DNA of 45,943 nt from Prasinococcaceae sp. CCMP 1430 (Eukaryota; Plantae; Prasinodermophyta), in the NCBI GenBank assembly GCA_013416795.1, contig RQSC01000031.1, forward strand, positions 296,696 to 342,638, in the 5' to 3' direction. This document shows positions 5,304-28,746 of the stretch, piece after piece. Position numbers and translations under genes: made by a program. The first letter of the stretch is position 1. Each line of letters begins with the position of its first letter. The notes beneath the pieces were generated by a model, which was not told where the DNA came from, did not search any database, and worked only from the letters and a program-made list of their open reading frames with translations.

Positions 5304-7283
5304 TCAGCAGAGCTGCACGACCGCCACCACTCGTAGCGTGCCTTCGGGGGTCAGGAACAGGAACTGCTCGAGCTCCTCGAAGAGAAGCGCGGTGCGCCAG
5401 CCCCATCCCTTGGGTGCCTTGGGCAGATGCGTCTCCTTCGAGTCGGGCTGGATCGATCCCAGCACCATCAGGCTGCCTGCGGCGGGGCAGATGAGCTGGT
5501 AGCGCGCGTACACCCGCTCGCGGGTGTCGACGTACGGCACCGGCATTTGACCACCCGCGGCGGCCGACGCGCCCCCGCTGCTCGACGCACCTCCGACGGC
5601 GCGCCCCCCGCGGCCGTGGCCGTGGCCCTGGCCGTGCGCGTGCCCACCGCCCGGCGATCCCTGGGCAGGCGCGCTCTCCACCGGGCAGCGCCGGTGCAGA
5701 AACAGGCCCAGCGTGCGCCGCGAGTGCGGGTCCTCGTCGTTGAAGGCCTGAACGCTCACCTTCCAGAGGGAGCCCGCGTAAAACACCTCCTCGCTGTGTT
5801 GACTTTGCCCGTTCGTCACAGAGCGCACGTTCGAGAACTCGACCGAAAAGCGAAAGGGGGGAAACGCCGAGAGCGGACGCGGCGCGGCGCCACGCGGCAC
5901 ACCGCCCAGGGTCGAGCCCGAGGGCATGGCAGACAGCGAGCGACCGAGCCCGCCGGAGGGCGACTTGACCATCTTTGGCCTGTCGCCGCCAGTGCCGTCG
6001 CCACTGCCGCCTGATCGAGGCGAGGCCGGACGCGGCAGCCCGCCGCTGCCGCCGTCGGTATCGTTGCCCGCGGCGTCACCATCGCCCCCAGCGACGCGGA
6101 GCTTGGACAAGGCCTCGGCCGCGGCATCGGCGCTCGCGCTGGCCTCTGAGGCTTGGACGTTCGGCCTGTCCTTTTCGTAGCCCTGAGCCGCACAGGCCTC
6201 CACCCTGCTCCTGAGCGCCGTTTGCTCCCACAGCCCGTCGCTGACCGCGTCGTGGGGCAGACCCTCCTCGTCGACCTCAATGCGCACGCCCAGCAGCTGG
6301 TCATGCGTCATGTGCGAGAAGGCCACGGCGCCGCTCTTTTCACCGAGCAGCTGGCGGGCCGCCTCGAGCTCCTTCTCCTCCGCGCCGCGCAACTCGTCGC
6401 CCACTTCGCTCGGGGCACCTGCGCTCTCGCTGTGCGCCTGCAGCGTCTCGGCCAGGTTGGCGCGGCGCTGGCGCAGCACCTCGAGAACGAGCTCGTAGCG
6501 GTCGTGCTCCGAGGGCACCCACAGCTCGTCGCTCGCTAGCAGGCGCACGAGGGTCTGCAGCGGTAGGGACGGCAGCAGCGCGCGCAGCTCGACGCTCGCG
6601 CCGCGGCAGAGGTAGCCCCAGCACGCCTGGCGCACGTTCTCGCCGTGCTCGCCGTAGTGGTTCTCCTCGGCGAAGTGGACGTAGCCGACCACTGTGTCCT
6701 CGGAGACGTCGCTGACGATGGACTCGGTGCAACGCGCGCATAGCTTCTCGAGGCCCAGGAAGGCCGCGGCCGCCAGCAGCGGGAGCGCGGCCGTCGGCTC
6801 GAGCGAGGGCTGGACGCCGTACAGGTAGCCGAGCGCTGCCTTGACCGCATCGGCGTCGACGTTGGGGTCGTCTATGTTCAGCTCCACGCGCAGCGCGGCG
6901 CCGTCGGCACCGTCGGCGGGCTTTTGCTGCCATCGCTCGCCCAGGACGGCATCGAAGTACGGCGCGCGGCAGAGCACCAGCCTGTGCAGCGCGTACTCGC
7001 AGCCGAAGGCCACCACTGTCACGTCTGAGAACGCCCCCTCCTCCCAGCCCTTCTTCTGCAGGTGCGTGAGCAGCGAGCCGCTGCACGCGGGGAACGGCAG
7101 CGCCGGGCCGTTCTCGCCGCCCGCAGCGTCGCCGTCGCGCGTGCCGTTCGGCGTGTCCGCCCCCTCCCGCTCAGCATCGGCCCGCGCGCTCGCCATGGCC
7201 GCGCGCACGCTCGCCGTAGACGGCAGGTCGCCGTCGGTCTCCAAGAAGCGCACGAGGTGCGGGCTCGACGCCAGCACGGGGTG
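5304..7283 (-). CDS. BTB/POZ-BACK protein with conserved C-terminal beta-rich (MATH-like) domain, plant-type; 5' end runs into N gap at 7284
   Basis: BTB core AFSDVTVVAFGCEYALHRLVLCRAPYF; BACK-like LLASDELWVPSEHDRYEL; C-terminal EVFYAGSLWKVSVQAFNDED..RRTLGLFLHRR and LPKAPKGWGWRTALLF, which I recall from a conserved land-plant BTB family. Confidence 0.8.
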   Translation of the reverse strand, partial: HPVLASSPHLVRFLETDGDLPSTASVRAAMASARADAEREGADTPNGTRDGDAAGGENGPALPFPACSGSLLTHLQKKGWEEGAFSDVTVVAFGCEYALHRLVLCRAPYFDAVLGERWQQKPADGADGAALRVELNIDDPNVDADAVKAALGYLYGVQPSLEPTAALPLLAAAAFLGLEKLCARCTESIVSDVSEDTVVGYVHFAEENHYGEHGENVRQACWGYLCRGASVELRALLPSLPLQTLVRLLASDELWVPSEHDRYELVLEVLRQRRANLAETLQAHSESAGAPSEVGDELRGAEEKELEAARQLLGEKSGAVAFSHMTHDQLLGVRIEVDEEGLPHDAVSDGLWEQTALRSRVEACAAQGYEKDRPNVQASEASASADAAAEALSKLRVAGGDGDAAGNDTDGGSGGLPRPASPRSGGSGDGTGGDRPKMVKSPSGGLGRSLSAMPSGSTLGGVPRGAAPRPLSAFPPFRFSVEFSNVRSVTNGQSQHSEEVFYAGSLWKVSVQAFNDEDPHSRRTLGLFLHRRCPVESAPAQGSPGGGHAHGQGHGHGRGGRAVGGASSSGGASAAAGGQMPVPYVDTRERVYARYQLICPAAGSLMVLGSIQPDSKETHLPKAPKGWGWRTALLFEELEQFLFLTPEGTLRVVAVVQLC

Positions 7284-7309
7284 NCCGGCCGCGGGCCGGC
7301 CCACGCGCC

Positions 7310-8863
7310 ATGAGGGGCGACGCGGGCCGCAGGGCCGGCACCAGCGCCGGCGGCGGCGAGCGCCCAGCGCCGGCGCTCGGCACGCTGCAGATGGTGGGCA
7401 TCGTTTTCATGGCGGTCGCTGGCGGGCCGTACGGGTTTGAGGAGGCTGTCGCTGCCGGCGGCCTGCGGCTCACGCTCGTGTTTCTCGCGGCGCTGCCGCT
7501 GGTCTGGTCGCTGCCGCTTGCTCTGATGACAGCTGAGCTAAGCTGCCTCATGCCGGAGAACGGCGGGCACGTCGTGTGGATAGACAGAGCGTTCGGGCAG
7601 ATGTTGGGCTCGATGAACGCGTGCGCGGCGTTCCTGACCAACGTGTTCGACAACGCGCTTTACCCGGTGCTCTTCGTCGAGTACGCCAACGACCTTCTGA
7701 GCGGCGCCGACGCGTGCGACGGCAGCGGCGCGGACGGCTGCGACCGGCTCAGCGGTTGGCCGGCCTGGGCCGCCAAGGTCGGCGTTCTCGCGGTCGCCGC
7801 TGCGCTCAATCTGCGCGGCGTGCGAGCTGTCGGCGACGGCTCGGTGGCCATGACCGCGTACGTGCTGCTGCCTTTCGCGGTCATGGCGGCGCTGGCGCTG
7901 TGGGCGACCGTTGCTGGCGATGGCGAGGACGTGGCTGCGCCGGCGCCCTCGCTCGCCCCGCCTGGCAGCGGCGGCGGCGGCAGCAGCGGCAGCGGCGGCG
8001 TCGCGTGGGGCCAGTTCCTGGCCATCATGACGTGGAATCTGAGCGGCTTCGACAGCGCGGGCGCTTGCGCGGGCGATGTTTCGAACCCCAGTGCCGTGTA
8101 TCCGCGTGCTATGGCGATCAGCATGGTGCTTCTCGTCGTCAACTACGGAGCACCGACGCTCTCTGCCAGTGTGGTCCTGAAGGAGGACCAATTCAGCGAC
8201 GGCGCGTACCTCTACGCGGCGGGGGCACTTGGCGGCCAGTGGCTGAGGGTGTGGACGGGCACTGGCGCGCTCGTGTGCACCTTCGGGCTGCTGGTCACGC
8301 TCCTCTTCACGAGCTCCAACTCGGCGTACGGCATGGCGCGTCTTGGGCACATGCCGCGCGCGCTGGGCAAGCTCGCGCGCGGCGACACGCCGTACGTCTC
8401 GATTCTGACCAACGCGGTCCTCAGCGCGCTGGTGCTCAACATGAGCTTCGAGTTGCTCGCGCAGGTCGACATGGTCTTCTATTCGGTGTCCACCATACTC
8501 AAATTTGGCGCGCTCCTGAAGCTCAGGGGAGAGGGTGCGCTCGCGAGAGCGGACACAGCATACAAGGTCCCGCTGGACGGCCTTCCGCTCGTCCTCGCCT
8601 GCGTTCCTCCGTGCACGTGCTGCGCTTTCACCGTGCTCACGGCGCCCCCGCCGGCGCTTGCGGCCAGCGCCGCCGCACTTCTGGCGAGTGCCGGTGTGTA
8701 CTACGTGCGGGATTGCTGCCTTGGGCAGTATGGGAAGAGCGGCGATGAGCGGCTGGGCAGCGCGATGGGACTCCCGCGCGCCGATGGCACCGGTGTCCGC
8801 TCCGTGACCGAGAATGCCGGGCGCGCTTATGAGCCCCTCGACCAGGAAGAGGGCACGAGCTAG
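7310..8863 (+). CDS. APC-superfamily polyamine/amino-acid transporter (PUT/RMV1-like)
   Basis: TM1 VAGGPYGFEEAV, WSLPLALMTAEL, PENGGHVVW, WNLSGFDSAG; multiple hydrophobic segments; intronless 517 aa. Confidence 0.85.
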   Translation: MRGDAGRRAGTSAGGGERPAPALGTLQMVGIVFMAVAGGPYGFEEAVAAGGLRLTLVFLAALPLVWSLPLALMTAELSCLMPENGGHVVWIDRAFGQMLGSMNACAAFLTNVFDNALYPVLFVEYANDLLSGADACDGSGADGCDRLSGWPAWAAKVGVLAVAAALNLRGVRAVGDGSVAMTAYVLLPFAVMAALALWATVAGDGEDVAAPAPSLAPPGSGGGGSSGSGGVAWGQFLAIMTWNLSGFDSAGACAGDVSNPSAVYPRAMAISMVLLVVNYGAPTLSASVVLKEDQFSDGAYLYAAGALGGQWLRVWTGTGALVCTFGLLVTLLFTSSNSAYGMARLGHMPRALGKLARGDTPYVSILTNAVLSALVLNMSFELLAQVDMVFYSVSTILKFGALLKLRGEGALARADTAYKVPLDGLPLVLACVPPCTCCAFTVLTAPPPALAASAAALLASAGVYYVRDCCLGQYGKSGDERLGSAMGLPRADGTGVRSVTENAGRAYEPLDQEEGTS

Positions 8864-9139
8864 AGAGGGGTCCGTCGCTACGGAGGCAGGTAGGTGGGTG
8901 TAGGTAGGTAAGTGGCTTAATACATGGCTAGCTCTAGAGAGTCCCTAAATTCTACTACTACGTCGTCTGGTTGATCTGGAGGCACCAAAACCGCACGCGC
9001 GGGAGAGCTCAGTGCGCTGCCCGGAGCACGTGCGCGCTCGCCTGGCGCAATCGCCTTCGCCTCCTGCGGTCCTTTGCAACTTCGATCCGATGCCACCCCC
9101 CATCCCCTTACCCCCACCCCACCGCAGCCCAGGCCTCGC

Positions 9140-11161
9140 TCATGGCCCGTTGGACATGAAGAAGGTCCGATTGCCCGTGCGCTGCTTGCCGGACGCGTCG
9201 GGGTCTTGGTTGCGCATCTCAAGGAGCTTGAGCCTCTCGAGATGGGCGCGCATGGCGGTGGCCTTTGACTCGAGCTTGGCGCGCTGGCGGCGCTCGAGAT
9301 CGTCATCGAGCCTCGCGCAGCGCTTGCTCATCTCCTCCGAGTGCTTTCTGATGCGCGCCTGGCGCGCCTCAGCGCGTGAGCGCATGCGAGCGCGCTCCTG
9401 TGCCTGCTGCGCGCTGAAGATCTGCTCGCGGCTGGCCGGGCGGCGCACCGAGGCGTCGCCGTACGCGGGGGTGCCCGGAGGCGCGCTCAGGACGAGGCCC
9501 GTGTTGCGACCCACGGGTGTGGAAGCGAAGCGCCCCCTGCCACCTCGCACCATTCGCGTGTCGGCCGAGCGCGGGCGCGTTGGCGATGCCACGCGCGACC
9601 TCGCCATCGGCGTCGACGCTGTCGCGCTCGCCGAGTCGGTGCCGGCGCTCGCCGGGCGCATTGCCAACGTCTCCGAATGCACGCCGCTGCCATGCACGCC
9701 GCCACTGGTACGCGGCCGCAGCCGCCCACCCGGGCGTCGCACGCTGACGCGCGGGTCGCGCGCGCCCCACGCTGCGCCGTCTTCCCTGTTCATGAGCTCC
9801 AGAGGCTGGATGGGCTGGGCTTCCTCGGGGACCAAGTGACCCGCCATCGGGTTGGCGGTGTACGCGCGCGCCTGCGAGAGCTGTGAGGCGTCTGACAGGT
9901 CGCTGAGCCCGTTGACGAACTCACGGTAATCGACGTAGCCGTCGCCGCTCGCGTCGATGGACGCCACCACCTCGGCGACCTCCGCCTCGTCGAGCACGGG
10001 GCACGCAGAGGCGAGGCCCAGCTTGAACTCCTCCTGCGAGAGCACGCCATCGCCGTTGATGTCCATCTGCTTGAAAGCGTTCCTCAGCTTCTTCGAGGAG
10101 CGGTACATCGTGTCGCCCAGGACGCGGATGGCGCGCGTGCCGCCAATCCGCGCGATCGTTTCGTCGCGCCGCGCGGCTGCCGCGCGCTCCTCTTCGGCGG
10201 TGCGACTGGGACGCGACGATTCGAAATCCATTCCGACGATCTCGTGGCGGTCGAAGCGCTTGAAGAATTCCTCGTAGTCGATCGCCCCGTTGCCGTCCGC
10301 GTCGACCATCTGGCAGAGCCGCCGCACATGCCGCGGCTGCAGCCCCAGCCCGAGCTTATCGATGCCGCTCGTGAACTCCTCGTACGACAGCCCGCCGCTG
10401 CGGTCGGAATCCATCGCGCGAAAGGCGCTTCGGATGGTCGGCCCCGACTCTTCGAACTTGCGCACGATCAGGCGCGTGAGCAACTGGTCCGCGCGTCGCT
10501 CCTCGTACGAGCCCGGGGGGTACACGGGCTTGGCACCCACCGCAGGCGCCAGCTCGGCGCGCTTGCGGCTTGCCAGCAGCTCCTCGAAGCGCGAGTGCAC
10601 GGGCTCCCACGGGGCGCCGGTGAGCACGTTGTCGCGTGGATGCATCTGCTCCTCGTGGATGTTCGGCTGCAGCGGCTGGTAGCTAGCGAAGAAGTCGATG
10701 AACTCTTCGTAGTCGATTGTGCCGTCGCCGGTGCGGTCCAGCGTTCCCACCACGCCGTCGATTTGCGCATCTTCCAAGCCAAAGTTGAACTGTTCCAGGC
10801 CCTTCCGCAGCTCGCCCTTGTCGAGGGTGCCGCTCTGATCGACGTCCATGGATCGAAATTGCTGGCGCAGCTTGTCGAGTTTGTCGCCCATCGAGTAGAA
10901 CTTGTCGCCGATGCGCTTGAGCAGCGCACGCTCGTCGCGGACGCCGTATGATAGGGCGACGCGCTTTTTCGTGGGCTGCGCCGCACTTCCGGGTCTTTCC
11001 GCGTCCGTTGACGCCGCCGAGGCCAGGCCGGCGCGCGCCCCAGCGCTGCCGGTGCTCGCAGGACGGCTCGCTCGGCAGCCGCCGGGCGTCCTCGCGCCGG
11101 GCGTGGAGCGCGCGGTGGGCCAGAAGTCGCCCTTGTTGGAATACCTCGTGTACTCGCCCAA
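9140..11161 (-). CDS. Multi-EF-hand Ca2+-binding protein (6 EF-hands in 3 pairs); true start unresolved
   Basis: Loops DVDQSGTLDKGE, DRTGDGTIDYEE, DSDRSGGLSYEE, DADGNGAIDYEE, DINGDGVLSQEE, DASGDGYVDYRE. The track start is TTG; the frame stays open upstream to about 11360. Confidence 0.85.
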   Translation of the reverse strand: MGEYTRYSNKGDFWPTARSTPGARTPGGCRASRPASTGSAGARAGLASAASTDAERPGSAAQPTKKRVALSYGVRDERALLKRIGDKFYSMGDKLDKLRQQFRSMDVDQSGTLDKGELRKGLEQFNFGLEDAQIDGVVGTLDRTGDGTIDYEEFIDFFASYQPLQPNIHEEQMHPRDNVLTGAPWEPVHSRFEELLASRKRAELAPAVGAKPVYPPGSYEERRADQLLTRLIVRKFEESGPTIRSAFRAMDSDRSGGLSYEEFTSGIDKLGLGLQPRHVRRLCQMVDADGNGAIDYEEFFKRFDRHEIVGMDFESSRPSRTAEEERAAAARRDETIARIGGTRAIRVLGDTMYRSSKKLRNAFKQMDINGDGVLSQEEFKLGLASACPVLDEAEVAEVVASIDASGDGYVDYREFVNGLSDLSDASQLSQARAYTANPMAGHLVPEEAQPIQPLELMNREDGAAWGARDPRVSVRRPGGRLRPRTSGGVHGSGVHSETLAMRPASAGTDSASATASTPMARSRVASPTRPRSADTRMVRGGRGRFASTPVGRNTGLVLSAPPGTPAYGDASVRRPASREQIFSAQQAQERARMRSRAEARQARIRKHSEEMSKRCARLDDDLERRQRAKLESKATAMRAHLERLKLLEMRNQDPDASGKQRTGNRTFFMSNGP

Positions 11162-11734: not shown

Positions 11735-14700
11735 TCAGCCCATTGCTGCGTCCTCCGCCCACGCCCTGAGCAGGTAGCGCAGCTCTGCGCCGGCGAAAGC
11801 CCACGTCGCCAAACGCTCACGCGACGTGTGCCGGCGGTCCTTTGCCAGCGCATCAGCAGCCTGAGTAGCAACGCTGCAGAGCTCCAATCCGACCAGCCGC
11901 GCCTCCAGACCACGACGCGCGATGACATCCAGGCTTGCGAGCTCCTCCCGTGCGGAGATGAAGCGCGCGCGGAGAGCGCGGAGGGCGTCCCAGTAGGCAT
12001 CCTTGCCGCGCCGCTCCGAGACGCTAGCGGCGGCGGTCGTGTTGATCTCCTTGAGCTCCGCCAGCAGCCCGCGAGCGACCCGCTTGTACTCCTTGAGTGC
12101 AATTGCGGGAATGCGCGTGTTAGACCAGAACGGGCGCGGCGGCGGCGTGGATGCTGCAGGGGGCATCGGCGGCGCTTGCGGCGCGGATCGCGTGCGCTCG
12201 TCGAGCTCCACCAGCTTGTCGTTGACGGCTGCAAGCAATGAGGTTGATCGGTAGAACTTGGCACTTGTGCCCGACAGACCAAGCCCGGGATGCACCTTGC
12301 GGCTGCTGCTGCTGCTGCTGTCCTCGAAGTGCGCCAATCGCCAATGCGACTGGCCGTGCTCATCGTCATAGGTCGGCATCGCACAGGCCTCCTCTTTCAT
12401 GAGCGCGCGCGCAGCCTCTGACACGTCGTAGCCGTGTTTGGGAGCGTCGATGGCCAGAACGGCCAGGGAGCCCAGCTGGCGGAGCTGAGGCTGGAGAGCA
12501 CCGGGACGCTCTGTGAGAGACGTCTGAGCATCCACACAGCGAACCCACCGCGAAGAGGCGATGCCAAGCACGCGTCGCTGCTCGACGCTGAAGACGGCGT
12601 GCTCGCGAACTGCCTTGACCAGTCCGCCCATGTCGCGCACACTCCTCGCGTGGGCCGCAGATGCCTGCTTCACCCGTTCCACGTAGTCGGTGGTCCCAGG
12701 ACTTGAGGCGGGCGCGACCGTGCCCATGTTTGTCTTGGTTTTCTTCCTTGCACTCTGTTGCTCTTCGGTGCCATCGGACGCGGTGCTTCTGCTCCTCTTC
12801 TCACTCCTCTTCATCTTCTCCTTTTCGTCTCGCTTCGAGTTCTCAGCGCGGCACACCTTCCCAGCAGCGCCCTTGGTAGGCGCGGGAGCGCGAGGCGTCG
12901 CCGCGGCCGCCAGCGGCGATCGCCCGCCCGCCGCGCTCCTTGATTGCGACCGCGGCTTGGACGGCGATGGCGATGGCGCGAGGGCTGCCGGCGGCTTTGG
13001 CGGCGGCCTCGATCCCGGGGGCAGCGGCGGCTGTATGTCGGGCAGCAGCGCGAGCGCCGCCGCCTTCTTGGCCTGGCGCTCCTCCTCGGTCATGGCGGCG
13101 CAAACCCTTAAACCCTCCTTCTTGTGCAGGGAGTCGACGAAATCTCGCTCATAGACACACCACGCCGTGTCACCGTCGAAGTCGCCATTCGAGAGCCGCG
13201 AGGCCATGGAGGTCGTCTCGTCCGAGCAGTTTATGAAGATGACCCCTGGCATGAACACATCCAACTCTTGGCACGCGACCGCGGTTGCGACGACGACATC
13301 CTCCGGCTGATAGCTCGGCGACCTCCAGAGCGCCACCGGGCCCTCTACCCATCCATCTGGGCCGCGCACCGCTACCTCGCCCGGGCCCAACACCCCGAAG
13401 GGATCGGGGATCATGTACAGTTGCACCGCGGCCTGCAAAGGGATCTTGAAGTCAAAGAGCTCCTTGACCTCAGTCGCTTGGCGCCGCCTGAGGAACGCGG
13501 CAGCCTGTGAGGCGACGTCACGGTCATCGCCAGCTTCAATCGCCATTGAGACGGAGCTTGAACCGCGACGGCTAAGCAACTCCAAGAGTGCCTGCAGATT
13601 CTGCTCATCCTCGCGGACGCAGCGCCTCGGTAGACGCTCCAGTAGCCGCTGAGGACTGTTCGAGTCCGCCCAATTGTTGACCACAGCAGAGTGGGCCTCT
13701 GAGGCCATGCGCAGCAAGGCATTACGTAAGGCGAGAACCCCATCGTTCCCATTGGCCAGCCACGCACTAGCCTCCAGGACAGGGACAATCTCTCGGTATA
13801 GCCTAGGCGTATGGTGGATCGAGTCAGCCTTGCAATGCGCGACAACTTCAAACATGCACAGGCACGCATGTGGCGCGTCGCCGACGTCATACTTGACCTG
13901 GCTGTGCCTGATGGCCAGCGAGGATGTCTTCTCGAGCCCTAAGCGCTCGACGTAGTCCCTTTCCCTCAGCACAAGGAACATGCCCTTCGCTCCTCCGATG
14001 CGCGCCTGGAATGCGCTCGGAACAGATGATAAGGACAGCTGGTCGGCCACCCTCCTTCCGAGGCCCTCGCGCATGAATCCGCACCCATCGGTGAAGCATT
14101 CGCCGCGCTCATGGTCCGGGATCAGAGTTATATCACGGCTCCAATCGAGCTCGACGGTGGGCCGAGTCAGACTCAGGGAGAGTTCCAGATAGGCGCACGC
14201 CTTGAACGCCGGCTTGTTCAAGTTAGCCGCGCACTGAGGCATCATCTCCGCCAGGACGTCCTCGACGGCTATCCTATCAATGCCTCTCGATGACGAGTCG
14301 GAACTCTCAGCGAAGAAGTGCAGCACGCCAGGCTTGCAACAAAGCAGTCGGTACTGGCGACCCGCCACTGAGAGCGTCTCCCCCGTGAGCCGGCGAACCG
14401 TCGCGGCGCTGAGGTTGCCGATTCCAACCCTCAAGAACCTTCCATATCCAAATCGCCGCATAACGCGACGAGTGGCCTGCCCACTGCTCACGCTGTACTC
14501 CACGGGTGGGAAGAGCTCGATCTGAAGGCCGCCATCGTCGTTGTCCCGCGCTGCCGCGACGAAGACGAGCTCGCCTTGGCACGCCTGAGCGGCAGCGCTT
14601 GTTCTGTCGTGACCCCTGATGTCCTCGAAAGATTTTAACGCGTCTCTACTGTCGAAGGCGCTCGCCCAGCCTCCTGTTGCCCAATCAGGCTCCTTAATCG

Positions 14701-17700
14701 GCTCAGTCGAGTCCATCACGCAAGCGCACTTGCGGAAGGCGGAAGCGAGCTTGCGCTTGGCCATCAGCATCGACTCCGCTTCGCTCACCTCGGCAACGAG
14801 GCCTGCGGCCAGCATCTCATCAATGACCTCGACCTCCTTGCCCTCGTCGCGCATCGATTGCATACAAGCCGCAACGGCCCACTCCAGTAGAAACCGCCTG
14901 TCGAACGCCAAGGCATCCCACGCCTGCCAGAATGAAGCCCCTGTGGTGGCCTTGCCGAGGAGCTGGTAGCCTTTGCTCCGCAACGAGCGTCGCCCTTGAG
15001 CGCTGCCGGAAGCCGCTGTGGCCGGGCCGGCGGCGACGGTGCCGCGCAACAGCCGTTCTTGCACCGCCCTGATGCGATCGATGTTCTGCTGTTTCTCGAG
15101 TTCGTAAGGCACCAACGCAGCCGCATCCGCGACAGCCAAAGGAGTGTCGTTGTTGACCGGACAAGCGCCTTGAAGTGACTGTAGCGGCGGCACCACGGCC
15201 ACAACCGGACGCTTAAGCTCCTCCTCGATGGCCGCGATGATCTCAGTCGCTCGCGGCTCCGCGCACGCAGCGTCGAAGTCCTGTAGGCTGCAGTGTGTCG
15301 AGGGCTTCTTGGTCTTCGGCTCGACCTGGCTTGCCGCGATGAAGTTTCGAGCTTGCTTCCACGGTACCAGAACGCAGCCCTGATTGTGCGTGGCCGGCGG
15401 GACAACGAGATATGCCGAGAAGCGTGGCTGCGCGCAGCGACAAGTCAACCAGGCGAGCCCGTACCGGCCGATCGCGCGGCTTGAAAGGATGCCCTTGGCA
15501 AGGCTGGATTGAGAATTCGCGCTCGTGTTCGCGCGACGCGTCGCCAACTCATTTTCGCTGCGTGCCTCGTATCGTCGGCACGAAAGCAGCAAGGTGCCGC
15601 CGGTCCTGAACTGCAGCTTGCTGCGAGCCTGGGCGCTAAGAGCGTCCCAGCGAGGGATTTGCTGCAGCTTGAGGTCATTGCGAATGGCATCGAGGAGCTT
15701 TGTCGAAAGATCCGCTCGCCATGTGTTGGAAGCCTTGCCGTCAATGAGGCGTCTGAGGAGCGCGCGACAGCGTGCAGACACCAAGGCGTGGCCCGCGTAA
15801 TTTGCCGCGTGTATTAGTCTGAGGCGGCTTCGGTGGCTTGACACAGCCAGATCGAAGAGAACACCTTCCCGAAGAAGCAAGTCCTTCCAGCCCAGCCTCT
15901 CCTCTTCGGGGACGTGCGTCGCGGATGGTGCCTCGGCTGCTGATGATGCAATGCCAAGGCAGCACGCCGCCGCGTGCTCCACGTCGCTCTCAGTGTCGCT
16001 CTGGTCATCCCACTGCTTCGTAAACTTCCCACCGCAATCCTTTCGACGACGAGGCGTCAAGGACATGCATTCTATGCAGTCAGGACACTTCCACTTGCTT
16101 GCTCCAGCGCGATCTTGGGCTCCATCCGGCAGGCAACTCCGGTGAAACGCTCGCGGACACGTCGCGCAGCAAATGAGAAGCCCGGGCCCTGCGCACATGC
16201 TGCAAATCGACTCGTTGGGGTTCAGGGACGCCGGCAGTTCGAAAGTGGCCCAGACGTGCGCCACGGTAGTAGCTCCATTCGGGTGGCCCGCGCGCGTTTC
16301 CTCCAGGACTCTTTCGAAAGAGCGCTCCCATTCTATCCCTGCGGGGGTCGATGAGAAAACGAGGTGGCTGGCGTACTTCTCGTTCACACGCTGCACCCTG
16401 AACTGGAGGAGCCCCTTCACGATGAGTACACAGATCAGCTTCGAGAGGAACCACTCCACCAGACGCGGCGAGCAGCACGAAAATGGAAGAGCGGAGAGAT
16501 CGGCACGAGTTTTCTCGAGGAGCTGATTGAACGTCATGCTCTTCGCGGAGGACGTGAAAGCGGATAGAACACTGTGTGCAGGGACAGAGATGTCCTCCGA
16601 TTCGGCGTAGCACTCCTCGTCGAGGCCTGGATGTAACTCCAGGCAGACGTCGCAGAGCCCACAGTTCCCCCCGACGTCAGAGCTCTCGAGCGCTCGCTCG
16701 AGGGAGACCTTGCGGCAGGTGGCGACTGAGTCGAGCATGCGGAGGACCCGTATGGCATCATCGCGCCATGAGCGATCGCCGTGACCTAACACATTTGACC
16801 AAATCTTGAGGTCCTGGATGTGCCACGAGATAGAGCAGGCACCCGCGCCTCTGATGCGCCCCGCCTGCTCCATCAGCGCAACAGGGCTGGGAGGAACACA
16901 CAGCATTGCCACCCACTCTACATTGGGGTGTGCCTCCGCATGCGACAGCGCGGAGGTACTCACAACCACTTGCGTTTTGCCCTCGCGCCAACTATGGAGC
17001 ACCTCGCGCCTGGTCTCAGCGTCCATCCCACTCTCGCCTCTCCCGCTGTAATACGAAGCCAAATTTCCGAGCCTTGCAGCAAGGCTGCGCCCGTCCTTCT
17101 TCAGCTTGGAAAGCTCCATTACTGTATCGTTTGCGTCCGTTTTTCTCGGAACGAAGATGATGCCAGGACGCCCCAACAAAGTTTGACCTGGGTTCTGCGC
17201 ACTCGGGACTGCATCGAGCCCCCTCAGCAGCCTCTTCAGCGAGGCAGGGTCGCTGGGCCTTGCGCTAAGACGCTCCGTCACATCGTAAAAGATCCTGTGC
17301 TGCCTGCAGGACAGACGGAAGAACATGACGTTAGCGGTCTCGTCTGCCAGGCCAGTGATCTCACGAATCGCTGGCCAAAGAGGGCCAAGGGGGACGGCAG
17401 ACAATAGAGAGACCGGGGTCGTGCCACAGGACTGACGCACGCGTGCGACCCGCAGCCGGTACTCGTCAGCCTTGTCGTCGGCCAGCAGGTGGACCTCGTC
17501 GAGGCAGATGCGGCGGAGCCGTCCCTGCCTGCGGAGATCCTCGAGCGTCGACAGCAAGGCGGTTGGCCCGTGGGAATCGCCCCCGCTTGCTTTATGCAGA
17601 GTTGCTACGACGAGTGCCGCGCCCTGATGCCCCCGCAGCTCGGCGAGTTGGGCACGCTCAGCAGCGATCTTGTTGGGTTCGCTATCATGAGCCTCCAGCA

Positions 17701-18267
17701 GGAAGATCCTCAGCCCACCCACTGCCTGGCAGTTGCTGAGACTCGCGACCAGGGCGGTGGGCATTGCCTGCAGCGGGCAGAGGACCAGCGTGATTCCCCC
17801 AGCGGCGAGCGAGGGGCCCGCGATGGCCATGGTCTTGCCATGGCCCGTCGGCCACTCGCACACGACGTGGCGTCCGCTCAGCGAGGCGCGGAGCGCTTCC
17901 CTCTGCTGCGGCCGGAACTTGAAGCTCGCGGCGGAAGTGTTGCAAGCGGCGGCGAGAAAGGGCACCGACTCATCCAAGCGGCTCTCCACCGCAGCCTCGC
18001 TGGCATGACCGTAGCTGTGCATGCCGCTCATCCAGTCGGGCAGCTCAGCGTCGCGCAGGGCAGCCCTAAGCGCCTTCGCCCCTTCGCGGGACTTGATGAG
18101 CGCATCGAGCTCCCCGCCCCGCTCCCGGAGCTGCCGCTTCGCCTCAGCGAGTGCGGCATCGCCTGGTGCCGGCTGGTTTACCGCGGCGGATGCATCCTGC
18201 AGCCACTCGCTGCTGCTGTCCTCCCGCACTTCCTGCGCGCGCTCGAACGTGCGAAGAAGAATCACGG
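11735..18267 (-). CDS. RecQ-like helicase + RecQ Zn module + PHD finger + eukaryotic (RDR/QDE-1-type) RNA-dependent RNA polymerase fusion, main exon
   Basis: Helicase: FRPQQREAL, PTGHGKT (17831-17851), DEVH (17489-17500), PGIIFVPRK, EQAGR. Zn module: CRK..CGLCDVC (16643-16663). PHD: CSMC..CCATCPRAFHRSC..WKCPDC (16076-16204). RdRP: FTDGCG, FQARIGGAKG, GVLGPGEV, RSPSYQPEDV, catalytic GDFDGD (13169-13186), LAIDAPKHG. Confidence 0.88.
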
Positions 18268-18441
18268 CTTCAGTTTTTGTATTTGTTCAATCGCAACCGC
18301 GGTCGGTGCGTGCGACGTAGCGTGTGCGCACACGCGCGTGTGCGTGTGTTGGTTAGCACGTTGTACCATGTGTATATGTAGGCCGTAGGGGGAGCGGTCC
18401 GCGGATGGTGGGGCGCTGCATGCAATGCAGAGCGGACGCAC
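18268..18441 (-). other. Predicted phase-1 intron (174 nt) joining ePHD exon to the RecQ-RdRP exon
   Basis: AAAG|GTGCGT donor and GCTAAC branch-point. The first AG after the branch point (CTGAAG|) is phase 1 and gives an in-frame join ...MLSK-A-VILLRTF. Confidence 0.65.
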
Positions 18442-19147
18442 CTTTCGAGAGCATGCGACTGCTGCTGCACTTTGAGGCGCAATCTTTCGTACAGTACGCC
18501 TCGAAGTGCTCCTCTGACAGCAGCGCCACTCCATGCCGCGCCGCTACCCATAGACATGGGTAGTGCCACGCCGCGCCGCTCGTGCACGTGCCTGTTCGAG
18601 CGGTGCAGCGCACGCTTGCGCCCCCACGGCCGCAGTGTGCGCACGTCGTGGTCACCCCGTCGCACATCATGTCTTTACAGACTCGATGTGCGACGCCGCC
18701 ACGGCAGGCTTCCAGGGCACGCTCGTCGTGCACATCGTCGAACGCATACGGCGGCCCTTTGGCCGCCTCGTACGTAAGCCCGCAGAGGCAGCATGTGTCC
18801 GCCGCGCCGGATCCGCCCGCCGCGCCGGATCCGCCCGCCGCGCCGGATCCGCCCGCCGCGCCGACCGCTGCCGGGCAGCGCGCCGGCGACAGAGCTGGCA
18901 CGCCCAGCGCCGGCAGCTGCGACAGCGGCGTCGCTGCTGCCTCGCTGCGCCTTGCGCCGCAGAGCGCGGAGCTGGCGCTCCTCACGCTGCGCCTCGCGTA
19001 CGGGCGCCCTGCGCGAGCGCGCACGTGAGGAGCGCTCGCAGGCCCTGAGGATGTCGTCCATGAGGGGTGGCGGCGCGTGTGAGCGCCGCGGCGCGCACGA
19101 GTGACCCGCTTGTGCGCGGGGGGAGGGGGGGTATGGCCGCCCCCCAC
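18442..19147 (-). CDS. Extended PHD (ePHD, zf-HC5HC2H-like) exon; probable 5' exon of the RecQ-RdRP gene; start unresolved
   Basis: CCLC...AHRVC...TCAHCGRGGASVRC..TC...WHYPC...YCTKDC ligand pattern; no in-frame ATG before the first Cys pair. Confidence 0.65.
18799..18863 (-). repeat. 18-nt tandem repeat x3 (GAAGGS linker)
   Basis: (ccgccgcgccggatccgc) repeated three times. Confidence 0.85.
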
Positions 19148-19523: not shown

Positions 19524-20559
19524 TCACGCCGCCGCGGGCTTGGGCGTGGCCTCCGGGCCAGGGCCGTCGTCCTTCGCGGGCGCGAGCGGCAGCAGCTTGG
19601 CGCGGCTGTACGCGTACGATCCCGCGATCGCCACGCACGTGCCCGACACCGACGCCGCGGTCACCGGCGTGCTGAAGAAGAGGATGGAGCTGAAGATGAT
19701 GAAGACGCGCTTCATGGTGTTGACCACGGCGTACGTGACGGGCTTGAGCGAGGTCAGCGCGCCATAGCTCGACATGTTGTACAGATGGTACGTGATACCG
19801 CCGCCGAGCACCAGGTGCGTCAGCTGCGCGGTGCCGACCTTGGCGGCGCCCTCCGCGAGCCCCGGCCCCCAGTTGTGGCCGTCGAAGAGGATGGCGCCGG
19901 GCAGCAGGAAGCACAGCGACAGCATCGTGATGCACCCGTACAGGTTGATGCCCGATATCTCAATGCCGTCGAGCAGCTTTTTGCTGACGATGGTGCGGGT
20001 CACCACCGCCAGGTTGGCCACGTTGGCCGTCACGAACGCCGCCGTCGAGAAGTTGAGCTCGGTTATGGCCGCCACTGACACGCCGGCCACCACCGGGATC
20101 AGGCTCAGCCACACCAGCGCGTGGAAGCGCTGCTTGAGCACGAGCGCGCACACCGCCACCGTGTAGAGCGGTTCGGCGCTCTTGATGACGTGGGTGAAGC
20201 TCACCGCCGACTTGGACAGCGCGAAGCACGTGCCCACGTGGTTGACCAGGTGGCAGAGCGCCACCGGCAGCAGCTTCTTCCAGAAGCCTTTGGGCAGCTT
20301 CGGAGGCTCGACCACGCGCGTCAACCACAGCAGCGCCATGAAGATGCCGCCGCACAGGAGCTCCATCGTGCACATGAACATGGGATAGGGAAAGGCATTG
20401 AGCACGGACTTGTTGTAGAGGTTGAAGGCGACGTTGAAGGTGTACCATGCGACGACGAACCCCACGAGCTTGAGGTTCACCCCCGCCAGCGGCCCCGCTT
20501 TGCCCTCCTCCTCCGCACCCCCCTCGCGCGCGCCGGCGACGGCCGCGCGCGGCGGCGCG
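19524..20559 (-). CDS. Plastid phosphate translocator family (TPT superfamily; GPT/XPT-like); 5' part crosses N gap 20560-20606
   Basis: WYTFNVAFNLYNKSVLNAFPYP, AVSFTHVIKSAEP, YHLYNMSSY, NTMKRV. Confidence 0.85.
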
Positions 20560-21250
20560 NNNNNNNNNNNNNNNNNNNNNNNNNNNNNNNNNNNNNNNNN
20601 NNNNNNGCCCCTCTGCACGCCGGGTCGTCGCCGCCTCCGCCGAGGCGAGGCGCGCCCCCCCAGGGCCCGCGCCGCCGTGGCCCGCCAACCCCCGCGACTC
20701 GAGCGCGCTGTGCCGCCGCCGCCGCCGGCACACACCGCAGCCCTCGCCGCGACGCGCGAAAGAGGGACAGGTCGCGTTCGCGGTCGCGCTCACACAGAAA
20801 CCCTTTCAGCACTACCGAACCTTTACGTAAAATCAAGCCGTAACCGTAACACCCGCGGCACGCGCTCCGCTTTGCGGTTCCCCGGGCGGCGCGCGATATT
20901 TGTCCGCCGCCGCCGCGTCCGCGGGGCAGTTGCGCGGGCGGGGGAGGGCGCGGGCGCGGGGGCGACGCAGTGCGGTTTGATGGGACGGGGCGGAGGGCGC
21001 CGCGCCGCGCGCAAGGTCGCTCTGGCGGTGCTGCTCGATGCGAGCGGAGCGATGGGCCCAGCCGCCTGTGCCGGGGGATCGCGCGCCGGGCCGCATCGCT
21101 CGCGCTCGCGTCAGCGCGCCCTTCCAAGCGTCCCTTCGCGCTGACCGGACCGAACGACTGCGCACGCGCGGCCCCCCGCCCCCCACGCCGGCGGTCACCC
21201 CCCGCGCCCCCCTCCCCCACCCATCCCCTACCCGCGCTGCGCACTCACAG

Positions 21251-23453
21251 GCGCCGCAGATCGTCCTCCTCAGGGAGGGCACCGACACCAGCCAGGTGCG
21301 CGGGCGCGCGCGCCGCCGCCGCCAGCGAACGCCCGATCGGCGGTCAACGCCGCGCGCGCCGATTGAGCGGCATTTCGAAATTTCGGACGGAAATTCAGCC
21401 CGAAAATGCGCACGGAAAAAACGCGCGGACGCGCTGGCGCGCGCGCGGGCGGGCGTCCAACCGCGCGGCTGCCTGGCACGCAGGCGATGGGGAAGGGATT
21501 GCAAAGCGTGCGAAGGGACGCGTGACGCCCCCGGCCGCCCGGGAGAGGCCGCCGAGCGCCCGCTGAGACGGTCGTCACCCGCTCGCTCCACCTCCCACGC
21601 GCGCGCGTTTTTCTTTTCGAGCGCATTTTCGGCCAGCGGCTTTTGTTGCTGTTGCGTGTGCCGCCGGCCGCGCCTGCGAGGTGATCGGCGCCCACGCCGC
21701 CGCCGCCGCCGCCGCCGCGGCGCCCCGCACAGGCGACTTTCCCCCCTCCTAGCTCCGCAGCAAGACTGCGTGCTCCCCACTACCGTGACTCGAGCCTGAC
21801 GATGTATTTCTCCGCGCTCCGCATCCGCAGGGCACGGCTCAGCTGGTGAGCAACATCAATGCCGCGCTGGCGATCGTCGACATCGTGCGCACCACGCTCG
21901 GGCCGCGCGGCATGGACAAGCTCGTGGTCGACAAGAACAAGGGCCAGTCGACCATCTCGAACGACGGCGCGACTATCATGAAGCTGCTCGACATCGTGCA
22001 CCCCGCGGCCAAGACCCTCGTGGACATCGCGCGCTCGCAGGACTCGGAGGTGGGCGACGGCACCACCACCGTCGTGCTCCTCGCAGGCGAGATGCTGCGC
22101 GAGGCCAAGCAGTACGTCGAGGACGGCGTGCACCCGCAGCTCATCATGCGCGCGTTCCGCACGGCGCACCGCCTGGCCACCGCGCGCCTCAAGGAGCTCG
22201 CCGTGTCGATCGCCGGCAAGGACCCCGCCGACCGCCGCGAGCTGCTCATCAAGTGCGCCAAGACGTCGATGAACTCGAAGCTCATCGGCGGTGAGAGGGA
22301 CTTCTTCGGCCCCATGGTGGTCGATGCGGTGCTCGCCACCGAGGCCGCCGACCTGCGCGAGAACCTCATCGGCATCAAGAAGGTCACAGGCGGCACCATG
22401 CGCGACTCGTTCCTCGTGAGGGGCGTGGCCTTCAAGAAAACCTTCTCGTACGCCGGCTTCGAGCAGCAGCCGAAGTCGTTCACCGACCCCAAGGTGCTGC
22501 TGCTGAACGTCGAGCTGGAGCTCAAGAGCGAGAAGGAAAACGCCGAAATTCGCCTCAAGGACCCCACCGAGTATCAGAAGATCGTCGACGCCGAGTGGGC
22601 CATCATCTACGACAAGCTCGACAAGTGCATCGCCTCGGGCGCCAAGGTGGTGCTGTCACGCCTGGCCATCGGCGACCTCGCCACGCAGTACTTCGCCGAT
22701 CGCGGCGTTTTCTGCGCAGGCCGCGTGGAGGCGCTGGACATGGAGCGCGTCGCCAAGGCCTGCGGGGGCATGGTGCAGACCACGGTCAACAACCTCATCC
22801 CGGAGGTGCTTGGCTCGTGCGGCGGGTTCGAGGAGAAGCAGGTGGGCAACGAGCGCTACAACCTCTTCACGGGTTGCGAGGAGAGCTCGACGTGCACGAT
22901 CGTGCTGCGCGGCGGCGCAGAGCAGTTCATCGAGGAGAGTGAGCGCTCGTTGCACGACGCCATCTGCATCGTGCGCCGCGCGGTGAAGCACGCGGAGGTG
23001 GTGCCCGGCGGCGGTGCCATCGACATGGCCTTGTCGGCCCACCTGCGCGCCCACGCGCGCTCCATTGCGGGCAAGTCCCAGCTCTTCATCAGCGCCTTCG
23101 CCAAGGCGCTGGAGGTGATCCCCAGGCAGCTGTGCGAGAACGCCGGGCTGGACGCGACCGACATGCTGAACAAGCTGCGCCAGAAGCATGCGCTGCCCAA
23201 CGGCGAGGGCGCGCGCTTCGGTATTGATATGGAGGGGGCGTGCGTTGGGGACACGTACGAGCTCTTCGTCTGGGAGCCGCTGCTGGTGAAACTGAACGCG
23301 ATCGCATCCGCCACCGAGGCGGCGAACGTCATCCTGTCGGTCGACGAAACCGTCAAGAACCCGAGCAGCGAGGAGGTGGGCGCGGCGGGCGCGGCCATGA
23401 GCGGGCGGGGGCGCGGGCGCGGGCGCGGCAGAGGTCGTGGCATGCGGCGCTAA
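21251..23453 (+). CDS. CCT7: T-complex protein 1 subunit eta; join(<21251..21295,21831..23453), initiator exon not identified
   Basis: [14 protein letters not shown]|[11 protein letters not shown] across a phase-0 intron, [29 protein letters not shown]-terminal GR repeat. Confidence 0.93.
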
Positions 23454-23588
23454 ATCACACCCCGCCGTACTGTAGCACATTTAATGGCCGGCGATAGAGC
23501 GCAGCCCGATAACAATTGCGATTGGCAACACGCGGAGGCTCGGTAGTGTACAGAGTCAATTTACACGAGCGCGTGCCGCCCCGCGCGC

Positions 23589-24376
23589 TCAGGCCTCCTC
23601 GCCCTCGCTGCCGGACGCTTCGGCGTCGTAGTCGTCGTCGAGCTCGGCGGCGCCCATGAGTGCTTCGGCACCCTCGGCCGCGCCCTCGGCGCCCACGTGC
23701 CCCGCGTCGACGTCGCCATCGCCGCCGTCCTCATCCTCGAAGAAAAGGTCGTCATCGAGGGCGTCCTCCACCTCGTCGTCGCTCCCGCTCTCGTCTTCGT
23801 CGCTGCCCTCATCGGCGCTGCCGCCGTCAGCGTCAGCACCAGCATCGCCAGCGGTGTCGACATCGGCGGCCACGAAGCCCTCGGCTGTGAGCACGACGGG
23901 CTCGTCGGCACGAAGTGCGTCTGCGATGGCGTCCTCCACATCACACTCCTCCGCGCCGGCCTCGTCCGACCACTCCTCCGCTGCGGCCTCGAGCGCCACG
24001 CCAGCGGTGGTGGCGGGGCCAGCGTGCAACCACGCGCACGCCGCCGTGCCATCGCCCGAGACGCACTCCCGCGGCGCCCCGTCCATGCACTCGGGCGGTC
24101 CGTCGGTGCCGTTTGCGCCCCGACCGGTGAGCCACTCGCGCAGGTGGCGCGGCGCGCGGCTAGCGATCGCGTCGGGCGGCGGCAGCCCCGCCGCGCGGCG
24201 CAGCTGCGCCTGGCGCAGGTACAGCAGCGCGCGCGCAGCTGGCGCGTCACGCGCGTCGCACGCAGTCCCATCCCACGAGCTGTCGGCGAGCGCCGGCCGG
24301 CGCACGACGGCGTCGGCGAGCGCGGCACCCCACGGCTGTGCGCGCGCGGAAGCGCCGTTGGCGAGCAGCGCCCCAG
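23589..24376 (-). CDS. Hypothetical protein with acidic C-terminus, 3' part only (5' in gap)
   Basis: Open frame from the gap edge to the stop at 23589; D/E-rich tail with GC3-biased codons. Confidence 0.55.
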
Positions 24377-25355
24377 NNNNNNNNNNNNNNNNNNNNNNNN
24401 NNNNNNNNNNNNNNNNNNNNNNNNNNNNNNNNNNNNNNNNNNNNNNNNNNNNNNNNNNNNNNNNNNNNNNNNNNNNNNNNNNNNNNNNNNNNNNNNNNNN
24501 NNNNNNNNNNNNNNNNNNNNNNNNNNNNNNNNNNNNNNNNNNNNNNNNNNNNNNNNNNNNNNNNNNNNNNNNNNNNNNNNNNNNNNNNNNNNNNNNNNNN
24601 NNNNNNNNNNNNNNNNNNNNNNNNNNNNNNNNNNNNNNNNNNNNNNNNNNNNNNNNNNNNNNNNNNNNNNNNNNNNNNNNNNNNNNNNNNNNNNNNNNNN
24701 NNNNNNNNNNNNNNNNNNNNNNNNNNNNNNNNNNNNNNNNNNNNNNNNNNNNNNNNNNNNNNNNNNNNNNNNNNNNNNNNNNNNNNNNNNNNNNNNNNNN
24801 NNNNNNNNNNNNNNNNNNNNNNNNNNNNNNNNNNNNNNNNNNNNNNNNNNNNNNNNNNNNNNNNNNNNNNNNNNNNNNNNNNNNNNNNNNNNNNNNNNNN
24901 NNNNNNNNNNNNNNNNNNNNNNNNNNNNNNNNNNNNNNNNNNNNNNNNNNNNNNNNNNNNNNNNNNNNNNNNNNNNNNNNNNNNNNNNNNNNNNNNNNNN
25001 NNNNNNNNNNNNNNNNNNNNNNNNNNNNNNNNNNNNNNNNNNNNNNNNNNNNNNNNNNNNNNNNNNNNNNNNNNNNNNNNNNNNNNNNNNNNNNNNNNNN
25101 NNNNNNNNNNNNNNNNNNNNNNNNNNNNNNNNNNNNNNNNNNNNNNNNNNNNNNNNNNNNNNNNNNNNNNNNNNNNNNNNNNNNNNNNNNNNNNNNNNNN
25201 NNNNNNNNNNNNNNNNNNNNNNNNNNNNNNNNNNNNNNNNNNNNNNNNNNNNNNNNNNNNNNNNNNNNNNNNNNNNNNNNNNNNNNNNNNNNNNNNNNNN
25301 NNNNNNNNNNNNNNNNNNNNNNNNNNNNNNNNNNNNNNNNNNNNNNNNNNNNNNN
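24377..25355. other. Assembly gap (979 N); other gaps at 7284, 20560-20606, 30283, 31089
   Basis: Runs of n in the sequence. Confidence 1.
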
Positions 25356-25460
25356 GACGCCCCACCCCCACCCCCACCCCCACCCCGCGTCCCCACCCCT
25401 CTCCGACGACGGCGCACAAACGGCGGCTGGCCGGCGGCTGGCGCCAACGCGCCGCGCGTG

Positions 25461-25485
25461 AAAAAAAAAAAAAAAAAAAAAAAAA
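25461..25485 (+). repeat. A25 homopolymer
   Basis: 25 consecutive A in otherwise very GC-rich DNA. Confidence 0.95.
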
Positions 25486-28408: not shown

Positions 28409-28746
28409 GCGAGACGGCGGGGAGGGGGATCTCGAGCGCTGCTCGCGGCGCAGGCGCGGGGGCACAATACAGAAACCACACACACAGACACACACACGTG
28501 TCACACACACACACACTCGCGCGCGCGCGCGTAGCGGCGACGACGGCCCGTGCACGCGTATTGTATGCGACCATCGATGGTGCACTGCGCGGATCGCTCG
28601 CGGTACAGACGGTAAAGTAAAACATTCTTGCAGGCAGTGTTCCCCGCAGAGCGCGCGTGCCCGCGCGTGCACACACGTGGAGCGTTGAAATGTACAAAAG
28701 CGTTACAGTGTGTGTGTGTGTGTGTGTGGACGGGGGGGGAGAGAGC

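Follow-up and report, generated by a model that had tools for sequence, protein, structure and literature searches.

A predicted protein of a prasinodermophyte alga that joins a RecQ-type helicase, PHD modules and a QDE-1-like RNA-dependent RNA polymerase

The stretch of Prasinococcaceae sp. CCMP 1430 DNA analysed here (45,943 nucleotides, hereafter the window) carries on its minus strand a locus that is best explained as a nuclear gene with two exons, belonging to a marine green alga with a GC-rich genome. The encoded protein of about 2390 residues would contain, in order, an extended PHD module (ePHD), a RecQ-type helicase, a canonical PHD finger, a long linker and a QDE-1-like RNA-dependent RNA polymerase (RdRP). 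We give a probability of roughly 0.55 to this reading as a whole, that is, to the gene model, to its membership in an old fusion family of the green lineage and to a quelling-like role assigned by analogy. The features are as follows.

Positions 18442..19061, minus strand: exon 1, with the ATG at 19061-19059, a basic, Ala/Gly-rich N-terminus and then the extended PHD
Positions 18799..18863, minus strand: GC-rich tandem repeat of 18 nt, 3.6 copies, within exon 1
Positions 18479..18793, minus strand: extended-PHD-like Cys/His module, CxxC ... HxxC ... CxxC ... C ... C ... HxxC
Positions 18268..18441, minus strand: intron of 174 nt, with donor AAAG/GTGCGT and a CTAAC branch-like site
Positions 11735..18267, minus strand: exon 2, a frame of 2176 codons with the stop codon at 11735-11737
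Positions 17396..17914, minus strand: RecQ-type helicase lobe 1, aa 118-290, with motif 0 FRPQQ, Walker A PTGHGKT, DEVH and a degenerate aromatic loop
Positions 17575..17584, minus strand: hypervariable poly-G tract, codon ~228
Positions 16853..17161, minus strand: helicase lobe 2, aa 369-471, with degenerate motifs V and VI
Positions 16643..16717, minus strand: RecQ zinc-binding module, C517, C535, C538 and C541, all invariant in the family alignment
Positions 16286..16603, minus strand: winged-helix (RQC-like) domain, aa ~555-660, AF2 pLDDT ~87
Positions 16076..16204, minus strand: canonical C4HC3 PHD finger, aa 688-730
Positions 14522..16060, minus strand: linker of ~510 aa, mostly predicted disordered, with a short helical region at ~aa 1050-1185
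Positions 12353..14476, minus strand: cellular RNA-dependent RNA polymerase, PF05183, aa 1264-1971
Positions 13169..13186, minus strand: catalytic loop GDFDGD, aa 1694-1699
Positions 12857..13114, minus strand: 86-codon Pro/Ala-rich segment of a low-complexity insert, just past the catalytic loop

The single frame of about 2177 codons reported in the original prediction is present as an uninterrupted ORF of 2176 codons (window positions 11735-18265, minus strand), in which all the motifs quoted for it (FRPQQ, PTGHGKT, DEVH, GIIF, QAGR, CRK..CGLCDVC and GDFDGD) are found. Position 18267 is the first base of exon 2, and the gene extends further upstream via the intron to the ePHD exon; when exon 1 (phase 1) is spliced to exon 2, the reading frame is continuous. 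The intron is supported by the finding that inter-haplotype indels which are not multiples of three are confined to 18268..18441. Moreover, its donor, CTAAC site and acceptor are conserved among haplotypes, the acceptor reading AAG in the window and CAG in the remaining ones. In the five environmental haplotypes L001-L005, exon 1 reads through as a single ORF between the ATG and the splice donor, with a length of 640 or 622 nt; in the window assembly it has 620 nt, so that the frame is broken between the ATG and the ePHD. At the 18-nt repeat the window has 1 nt extra and 21 or 18 nt missing compared with all other haplotypes, which is either an assembly error or a genuine frameshift. The neighbours of the locus are ordinary nuclear genes, which encode a TPT transporter, CCT, HSP90, an EF-hand protein and a permease. 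A low-GC block at 24-26 kb of the window turned out to be merely an N gap.

Long spurious ORFs are abundant in GC-rich genomes and this assembly has gaps, so that a frame of this length could have arisen from chimeric assembly or from an ORF running by chance across two adjacent genes. This is effectively refuted: more than 12 independent metagenome assemblies contain the locus in the same unbroken form, and the same domain order is found in a transcript and a genomic contig of Picocystis and in Chlorokybus.

In the helicase half, Pfam matches DEAD (aa 118-290, 39 bits) and Helicase_C (aa 369-471, 27 bits); there is no Pfam RQC match in the protein. The best family, PDB and fold matches are all RecQ, and the helicase domain is not of the Dicer/RIG-I-like kind. 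The best matches among solved structures are RECQ1/RECQ5/BLM/RecQ. When the AF2 model of aa 1-760 is superposed on RECQ1, ~570 columns align, the zinc module and the winged helix among them, and the target-normalised TM-score is 0.79-0.80, a fit to be read with the caveat that the model was built from a RecQ-rich alignment. The homologues P0172 and P0173 were left out. TIGR00614 (recQ_fam) is the best family for the window protein (aa 116-584), but the score of 65.5 bits does not pass the cutoff of 219.8, whereas Picocystis P0021 passes it with 224.5; Chlorokybus scores 189.8. The RecQ identity holds by best family, zinc module and fold, and it is that of a strongly diverged member. FRPQQ, PTGHGKT and DEVH are invariant across the fusion family, and the four zinc cysteines are conserved at 85% or more, mostly at 90% or more, in an alignment of 42 RecQ sequences. 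On the other hand, the aromatic loop of the window protein reads HLLAD--DKADEY, motif V is ALSHAEAH where AxGxGxDK is expected, and motif VI is GRIRGAG where GRAGRDG is expected, while the Picocystis homologue retains HVLLDWSNSFKPDY, ALGLGVDK and GRAGRDG at these places. The window protein keeps 42 of the 83 RecQ-conserved columns and Picocystis 64 of the 83; the branch of this alga in the helicase tree is about 3.5 times as long as that of Picocystis, and haplotype comparisons give a dN/dS of 0.45-0.72 for the helicase. By its sequence, the helicase of this alga is eroded, with about half of the RecQ-conserved residues lost and motifs V and VI damaged, and it is probably no more than a scaffold that binds DNA or nucleotides.

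The RecQ aromatic loop couples ssDNA binding to ATP hydrolysis, and its loss in the window protein would suit a helicase that acts on RNA rather than on DNA. It is well established that RNA-acting helicase partners of RdRPs are common, as in the RDRC of fission yeast, where the RdRP Rdp1 is found with the helicase Hrr1. The protein could then be a one-chain equivalent of the RDRC or of the Dictyostelium enzymes that remodels the template or the double-stranded product, with the PHD modules serving only for localisation. We consider this quite unlikely, as the family model, the zinc module and the fold are clearly those of RecQ and not of a Dicer/RIG-I or DEAD-box RNA helicase, and Picocystis keeps the aromatic loop and the RecQ motifs intact.

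The PHD finger that follows the helicase matches Pfam PF00628 with 26.5 bits (cutoff 24), and its ligands are invariant at 8/8 positions in the fusion family. The nearest solved PHDs are those of CHD4, AIRE PHD1 and Rco1/Cph; several acidic residues of the AIRE, CHD4 and Picocystis fingers are replaced in the window PHD, and histone binding there is therefore putative. Pfam gives no match for the ePHD exon upstream, which aligns to residues 77-137 of Picocystis P0021 (BLASTP E=0.003), where the N-terminal zf-HC5HC2H domain is itself a Pfam match. In the linker, Pfam finds no known domain and the low-confidence AF2 model reveals none.

The polymerase half was predicted as a complete cellular RdRP with the catalytic GDFDGD, and it is recovered as such by PF05183 (202.4 bits against a cutoff of 23.8, profile positions 15-560 of 582) and by its fold. 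Residues D1695, D1697, G1698 and D1699 are invariant among 33 aligned RdRPs. The AF2 model of the polymerase core has a pLDDT of 80-95, and a Foldseek search with it returns QDE-1 as the top 14 matches (E 3e-26 to 1e-23), followed by RDR2, which supports a two-barrel polymerase fold as in these two enzymes. By sequence, too, QDE-1 is the best match among solved structures. The dN/dS of the RdRP core is 0.07-0.27, even against a frameshifted haplotype; the polymerase core is under purifying selection in this species. The 86-codon segment at 12857..13114 shows in-frame presence or absence among wild haplotypes. An intron was considered for these 258 nt and rejected, because the indel between DNA haplotypes is in frame and the only GT..AG option (257 nt) breaks the frame.

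The architecture is also present in two distant green algae, in one of them as a transcript. In the Picocystis transcript P0021, the Pfam order is zf-HC5HC2H, DEAD, Helicase_C, RecQ_Zn_bind, PHD and RdRP, and its genomic counterpart, contig L006, has a single ORF of at least 2356 aa. Chlorokybus P0031 has RecQ, PHD and RdRP in the identical order, without the ePHD, and in the AT-rich environmental contig L031 a RecQ helicase and an RdRP are fused without a PHD. The Picocystis and Chlorokybus fusions were found by an exhaustive phmmer search with aa 1-760 as the query; word-indexed searches, run with either the complete protein or its RdRP region as the query, returned only the same-species cluster and weak fungal RdRPs. 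In separate phylogenies of the two halves, the fused proteins cluster together in the RdRP tree (UFBoot 86), and in the helicase tree they are set apart from 38 other RecQs (UFBoot 97). This grouping in both trees suggests a single, ancient fusion event in the green algae. Taken together, these data establish in what order the domains lie, which catalytic motifs and folds they have, that they are conserved, and that each half descends from a common ancestor.

Wild haplotypes differ at the poly-G tract of helicase lobe 1. The window and L001 read G5-CGATT and L005 has G8, in frame, while G7 in L086 makes a -1 frameshift and G10 in the L002 type a +1 frameshift, the latter allele being present in 7 independent assemblies. 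Altogether, at least 8 independent environmental assemblies carry a +1 or -1 frameshift at this tract and at least 4 are intact. The overall dN/dS is 0.5-0.6, and outside the polymerase core it is near 0.5-1. The gene may be dispensable in this species, and one alternative is that it is here a decaying, partly pseudogenised relic of a family that is functional elsewhere, with no working helicase-polymerase. The frameshift alleles, the out-of-frame exon 1 of the window, the long helicase branch, the missing RecQ residues and the dN/dS outside the core would all agree with such decay. However, the 2176-codon frame is uninterrupted in the window, as it is in several haplotypes, the low dN/dS of the RdRP core extends to a frameshifted haplotype, and the catalytic, zinc-ligand and Walker A/DExH residues are all retained; furthermore, the exon-1 break falls within a GC-rich repeat, in an assembly of draft quality that contains N gaps, and could be erroneous. 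We regard the relic as unlikely, but as the alternative to be taken most seriously.

Under the preferred reading of a chromatin-linked fusion enzyme, and by analogy with QDE-1 and QDE-3, attachment to chromatin would fall to the PHD modules and the binding or opening of DNA to the RecQ module, and the polymerase would use ssDNA or nascent RNA as the template for aberrant and double-stranded RNA. Such RNA would then enter an Argonaute pathway that silences repeats or damaged DNA. On this analogy, the likely role is to make aberrant or double-stranded RNA for quelling-like silencing from a position on chromatin. To our knowledge, every characterised PF05183 polymerase functions in RNA silencing, which argues against a DNA-repair or transcription-coupled factor without any small-RNA link, for example one that supplies stalled forks or breaks with RNA primers or R-loop RNA. 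Such a factor, which we consider improbable, would fit with RecQ helicases being repair enzymes and with the ability of QDE-1-type polymerases to copy ssDNA (PMC2950127). The original prediction saw in the protein a self-contained machine. Its RecQ-PHD-RdRP architecture is real, but about half of the RecQ-conserved residues are lost and the helicase is frameshifted in natural haplotypes, and for these reasons a fully working machine is doubtful in this species; Picocystis and Chlorokybus are more likely to have one.

More tentatively, RecQ-PHD-RdRP might be an ancestral enzyme of the green lineage that, in a single polypeptide, reads chromatin, opens DNA and transcribes ssDNA into aberrant or double-stranded RNA. 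In that case, RecQ and a QDE-1-like polymerase would have been partners, as in quelling, before the green algae split and perhaps, considering that L031 is an environmental fusion without a PHD, even before plants and fungi diverged; this would also hint at the original function of the gamma-type (DFDGD) RDRs of plants, which are poorly understood. When two proteins are found fused in nature, this is genetic evidence in its own right that they cooperate. The present fusion links a RecQ helicase with a QDE-1-type polymerase in organisms other than fungi and brings in modules that read chromatin, which suggests how RNA-silencing polymerases may be directed to particular DNA regions. The Picocystis and Chlorokybus proteins, with their intact helicase, are the best material for asking whether a single chain can turn duplex DNA into double-stranded RNA, and in the wild frameshift alleles we may be seeing a tiny marine eukaryote in the course of losing a component of RNA silencing.

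In agreement with the original prediction, which knew of no account of this architecture, no description of a RecQ-RdRP fusion was found in the searchable literature; the fusion sequences themselves are already in public databases. A similar arrangement is known in RrpA/B/C of Dictyostelium, where an SF2 helicase, related to that of Dicer, lies N-terminal to a PF05183 polymerase in a single protein. The order of helicase and polymerase is alike, but here the helicase is of the RecQ type and has a zinc module and a winged helix, and the Rrp proteins are not known to carry PHD fingers. Among green algae, Wang et al. 2021 (PMC7994812) described long-branch 'ancient RDR-like homologs' in Chlorophyta, Mesostigma and Chlorokybus. 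These are likewise RDR-like genes of green algae, including Chlorokybus; that paper mentions no helicase, RecQ or PHD for them, and the Chlorokybus fusion gene Chrsp187S02905 is absent from its supplementary table. The gamma-clade RDRs of plants (RDR3/4/5, tomato Ty-1/Ty-3, OsRDR3), which are also of the green lineage, have a DFDGD-type catalytic loop in common with the fusion protein, a likeness in loop type, but they are stand-alone enzymes with no known helicase or PHD; rice OsRDR3 copies ssRNA and ssDNA and acts on repeat-rich regions (PMC9290346). The same two enzyme classes, an RdRP/DdRP and a RecQ helicase, act in quelling and qiRNA production in Neurospora crassa, where QDE-1 takes ssDNA and RNA templates and needs RPA and QDE-3, the latter being required for the interaction of QDE-1 with RPA (PMC2950127). 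Here, by comparison, the two are joined in one polypeptide that is known from sequence, with a helicase that is degenerate in the present species and with two PHD-type modules, for which the fungal proteins have no known counterpart.

The single uninterrupted reading frame of the original prediction, joining RecQ helicase, PHD finger and cellular RNA-dependent RNA polymerase (RdRP), is present in the window assembly as 2176 codons at 11735..18265 on the minus strand without any break. All the motifs quoted for it were found, and Pfam matched four domains (residue numbers refer to this long ORF, which is exon 2 of the gene):

aa 118-290, minus strand, DEAD domain
aa 369-471, minus strand, Helicase_C domain
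aa 688-730, minus strand, PHD finger
aa 1264-1971, minus strand, cellular RdRP (PF05183, 202 bits)

The linker of 510 residues contains no domain recognisable by Pfam or in the AF2 model, and is mostly disordered by prediction. In a search of solved structures, the helicase part matched RECQ1, RECQ5, BLM and bacterial RecQ, and the best match of the polymerase part was QDE-1. The AlphaFold models point the same way: the AF2 model of aa 1-760 (pLDDT 77.8, pTM 0.75) fits RECQ1 (TM 0.79-0.80) from the two RecA lobes through the zinc module to the winged helix, and the polymerase core model has QDE-1 as its first match (E about 3e-26) and plant RDR2 as its second, an order reproduced by sequence searches. 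By score, the window helicase (65.5 bits) is below the NCBIfam RecQ cutoff of 219.8, with RecQ still its best family.

Comparison of haplotypes revealed that the gene reaches further 5' than this ORF. The model of exon 1 was built on five conspecific environmental haplotypes (97.6-98.3% identical), in which an ORF of 640 or 622 nt, from the ATG (window 19061) to the splice donor, encodes a Cys/His-rich extended-PHD (ePHD) module. The splice features are:

18442/18441, minus strand, splice donor AAAG/GTGCGT, conserved among haplotypes
18441-18268, minus strand, intron of 174 nt, from the haplotype indel pattern and splice signals

Indels that are not multiples of three between haplotypes are confined to this intron, which contains a conserved CTAAC and ends in an AG acceptor (non-window haplotypes read CAG), and splicing it out puts exon 1 in frame with the long ORF. 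Moreover, the ePHD gives a weak but in-register alignment to the zf-HC5HC2H domain at the N terminus of the Picocystis homologue. Exon 1 of the window assembly itself is out of frame, with one additional base and 21 or 18 bases missing within an 18-nt GC-rich tandem repeat; since this draft assembly contains N gaps, the break may be an assembly error or a true null allele. The surroundings of the gene are as follows:

5304-11161 and 19524-28672, flanking genes, mostly single long ORFs
20560-20606 and 24377-25355, assembly gaps (runs of N)

Of these gaps, the second accounts for the seeming low-GC block at 24-26 kb. The TPT transporter gene, a neighbour beyond the 5' end of the fusion gene, is broken by one N gap in its 5' part. 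The neighbours encode a multi-EF-hand protein, an amino-acid permease, a BTB protein, a triose-phosphate/phosphate translocator (TPT), a CCT/TCP-1 chaperonin subunit and HSP90. That the fusion is a mobile element or a chimera is disfavoured, because these are ordinary nuclear genes and the synteny of the locus is kept across metagenome contigs.

Exhaustive phmmer with aa 1-760 returned close kin only within the species' own cluster. The top distant match was a protein of 2784 aa from the Picocystis salinarum MMETSP0807 transcriptome, with the Pfam order ePHD, DEAD, Helicase_C, RecQ_Zn_bind, PHD and RdRP; its source means that at least one alga expresses the fusion on a single mRNA. Its helicase scores 224.5 bits, above the RecQ cutoff, and matches RecQ, RECQ1, BLM and RECQ5 at about 1e-44. 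A Picocystis-like genomic contig (L006) carries the same gene as a single ORF of at least 2356 aa, and in Chlorokybus atmophyticus a gene model of 1902 aa combines DEAD, Helicase_C, PHD and RdRP. Thus, the predicted architecture is real; it is not confined to the window alga and is common to chlorophyte and streptophyte lineages. A EukProt protein labelled as the haptophyte Pavlova lutheri (scaffold694) has the architecture of the Picocystis fusion and is 85% identical to it over the RdRP region; the assembly behind it is likely to be contaminated or to carry a wrong label. In addition, the environmental contig L031 (Ga0307404_10000418, 37.5% GC) carries an RdRP (PF05183) downstream of a RecQ-like helicase that has a zinc module; the fusion lacks a PHD finger and has one frame shift, in an A7 run:

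L031:1-5437, helicase-RdRP fusion, motifs APTGHGKS, DEFD, QEAGRAGRDN, CDNC zinc module and GGDFDGD

An RdRP fragment also lies at 267-3092 of L063 (Ga0308009_10015346), a short, very GC-rich (71.7%) environmental contig, which ends before any upstream helicase could show.

A maximum-likelihood tree built from 360 columns of the RdRP core in 42 sequences unites the enzymes of the window, Chlorokybus and Picocystis in one group (UFBoot 86), with L031, L063 and a further contig, L067, as its sister. The separate maximum-likelihood tree of the helicase core splits the three fused helicases from 38 other RecQs (UFBoot 97). The agreement of the two trees, on which long-branch effects may act, suggests one old fusion inherited vertically.

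The two enzymes differ in their state in the window species. The polymerase core has a dN/dS of only 0.07-0.27 among haplotypes, which indicates that the polymerase is constrained; the helicase reaches 0.45-0.72, and the overall value is 0.5-0.6. On a generic RecQ alignment the window helicase keeps 42 of the 83 conserved columns, against 64 in Picocystis and 58 in Chlorokybus, and its branch is about 3.5 times the length of the Picocystis branch. Its aromatic loop and motifs V and VI are altered; Walker A, the zinc ligands and DExH are kept. At codon ~228 a poly-G tract varies in length, with in-frame alleles (G5-CGATT or G8) and others that shift the frame: G7 (-1), seen in a single Tara contig, and G10 (+1), seen in seven independent assemblies. 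Taken together, the higher dN/dS, the lost residues and the frameshifts argue that the helicase is eroding, with apparent loss-of-function alleles common. A low-complexity segment of 86 codons after the catalytic loop shows in-frame presence or absence among haplotypes. Directly after this loop, the window protein has a low-complexity insert of ~150 residues (window 12700-13160, aa ~1716-1860), Pro/Ala-rich and then with a Lys/Arg/Ser/Glu-rich stretch resembling a nuclear localisation signal, which is absent from the Picocystis and Chlorokybus proteins.

For the family as a whole, we propose, with a probability of about 0.55 and by analogy with Neurospora QDE-1 and rice OsRDR3, a chromatin-anchored RecQ-polymerase: the ePHD and PHD modules would anchor the protein to chromatin, the RecQ module would bind or open DNA, and the polymerase would synthesise RNA or dsRNA to be passed to Argonaute. 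In the window species, the helicase part of this scheme may be weaker or gone.

As in the original prediction, which knew no description of this architecture, our full-text literature search found none of a RecQ-RdRP or RecQ-PHD-RdRP protein. The fusion sequences are already in public databases without a name. A survey of small-RNA genes in Viridiplantae (Wang et al. 2021, PMC7994812) reports 'ancient RDR-like homologs' in algae without mention of helicase or PHD, and its table does not include the Chlorokybus fusion gene. The catalytic loop is DFDGD in the window and Chlorokybus proteins and DYDGD in Picocystis, unlike the DLDGD of plant RDR1/2/6, and by literature comparison (PMC9290346) it resembles the QDE-1 or gamma-type class more than RDR1/2/6. 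Rice OsRDR3 of the gamma clade copies ssDNA and acts at repeat-rich loci (PMC9290346). Neurospora QDE-1 uses ssDNA and RNA as templates, and requires RPA and the RecQ helicase QDE-3 for aberrant RNA and dsRNA (PMC2950127). The enzymes and their partnership are already known, and the new part is the conserved single-chain architecture with chromatin readers.
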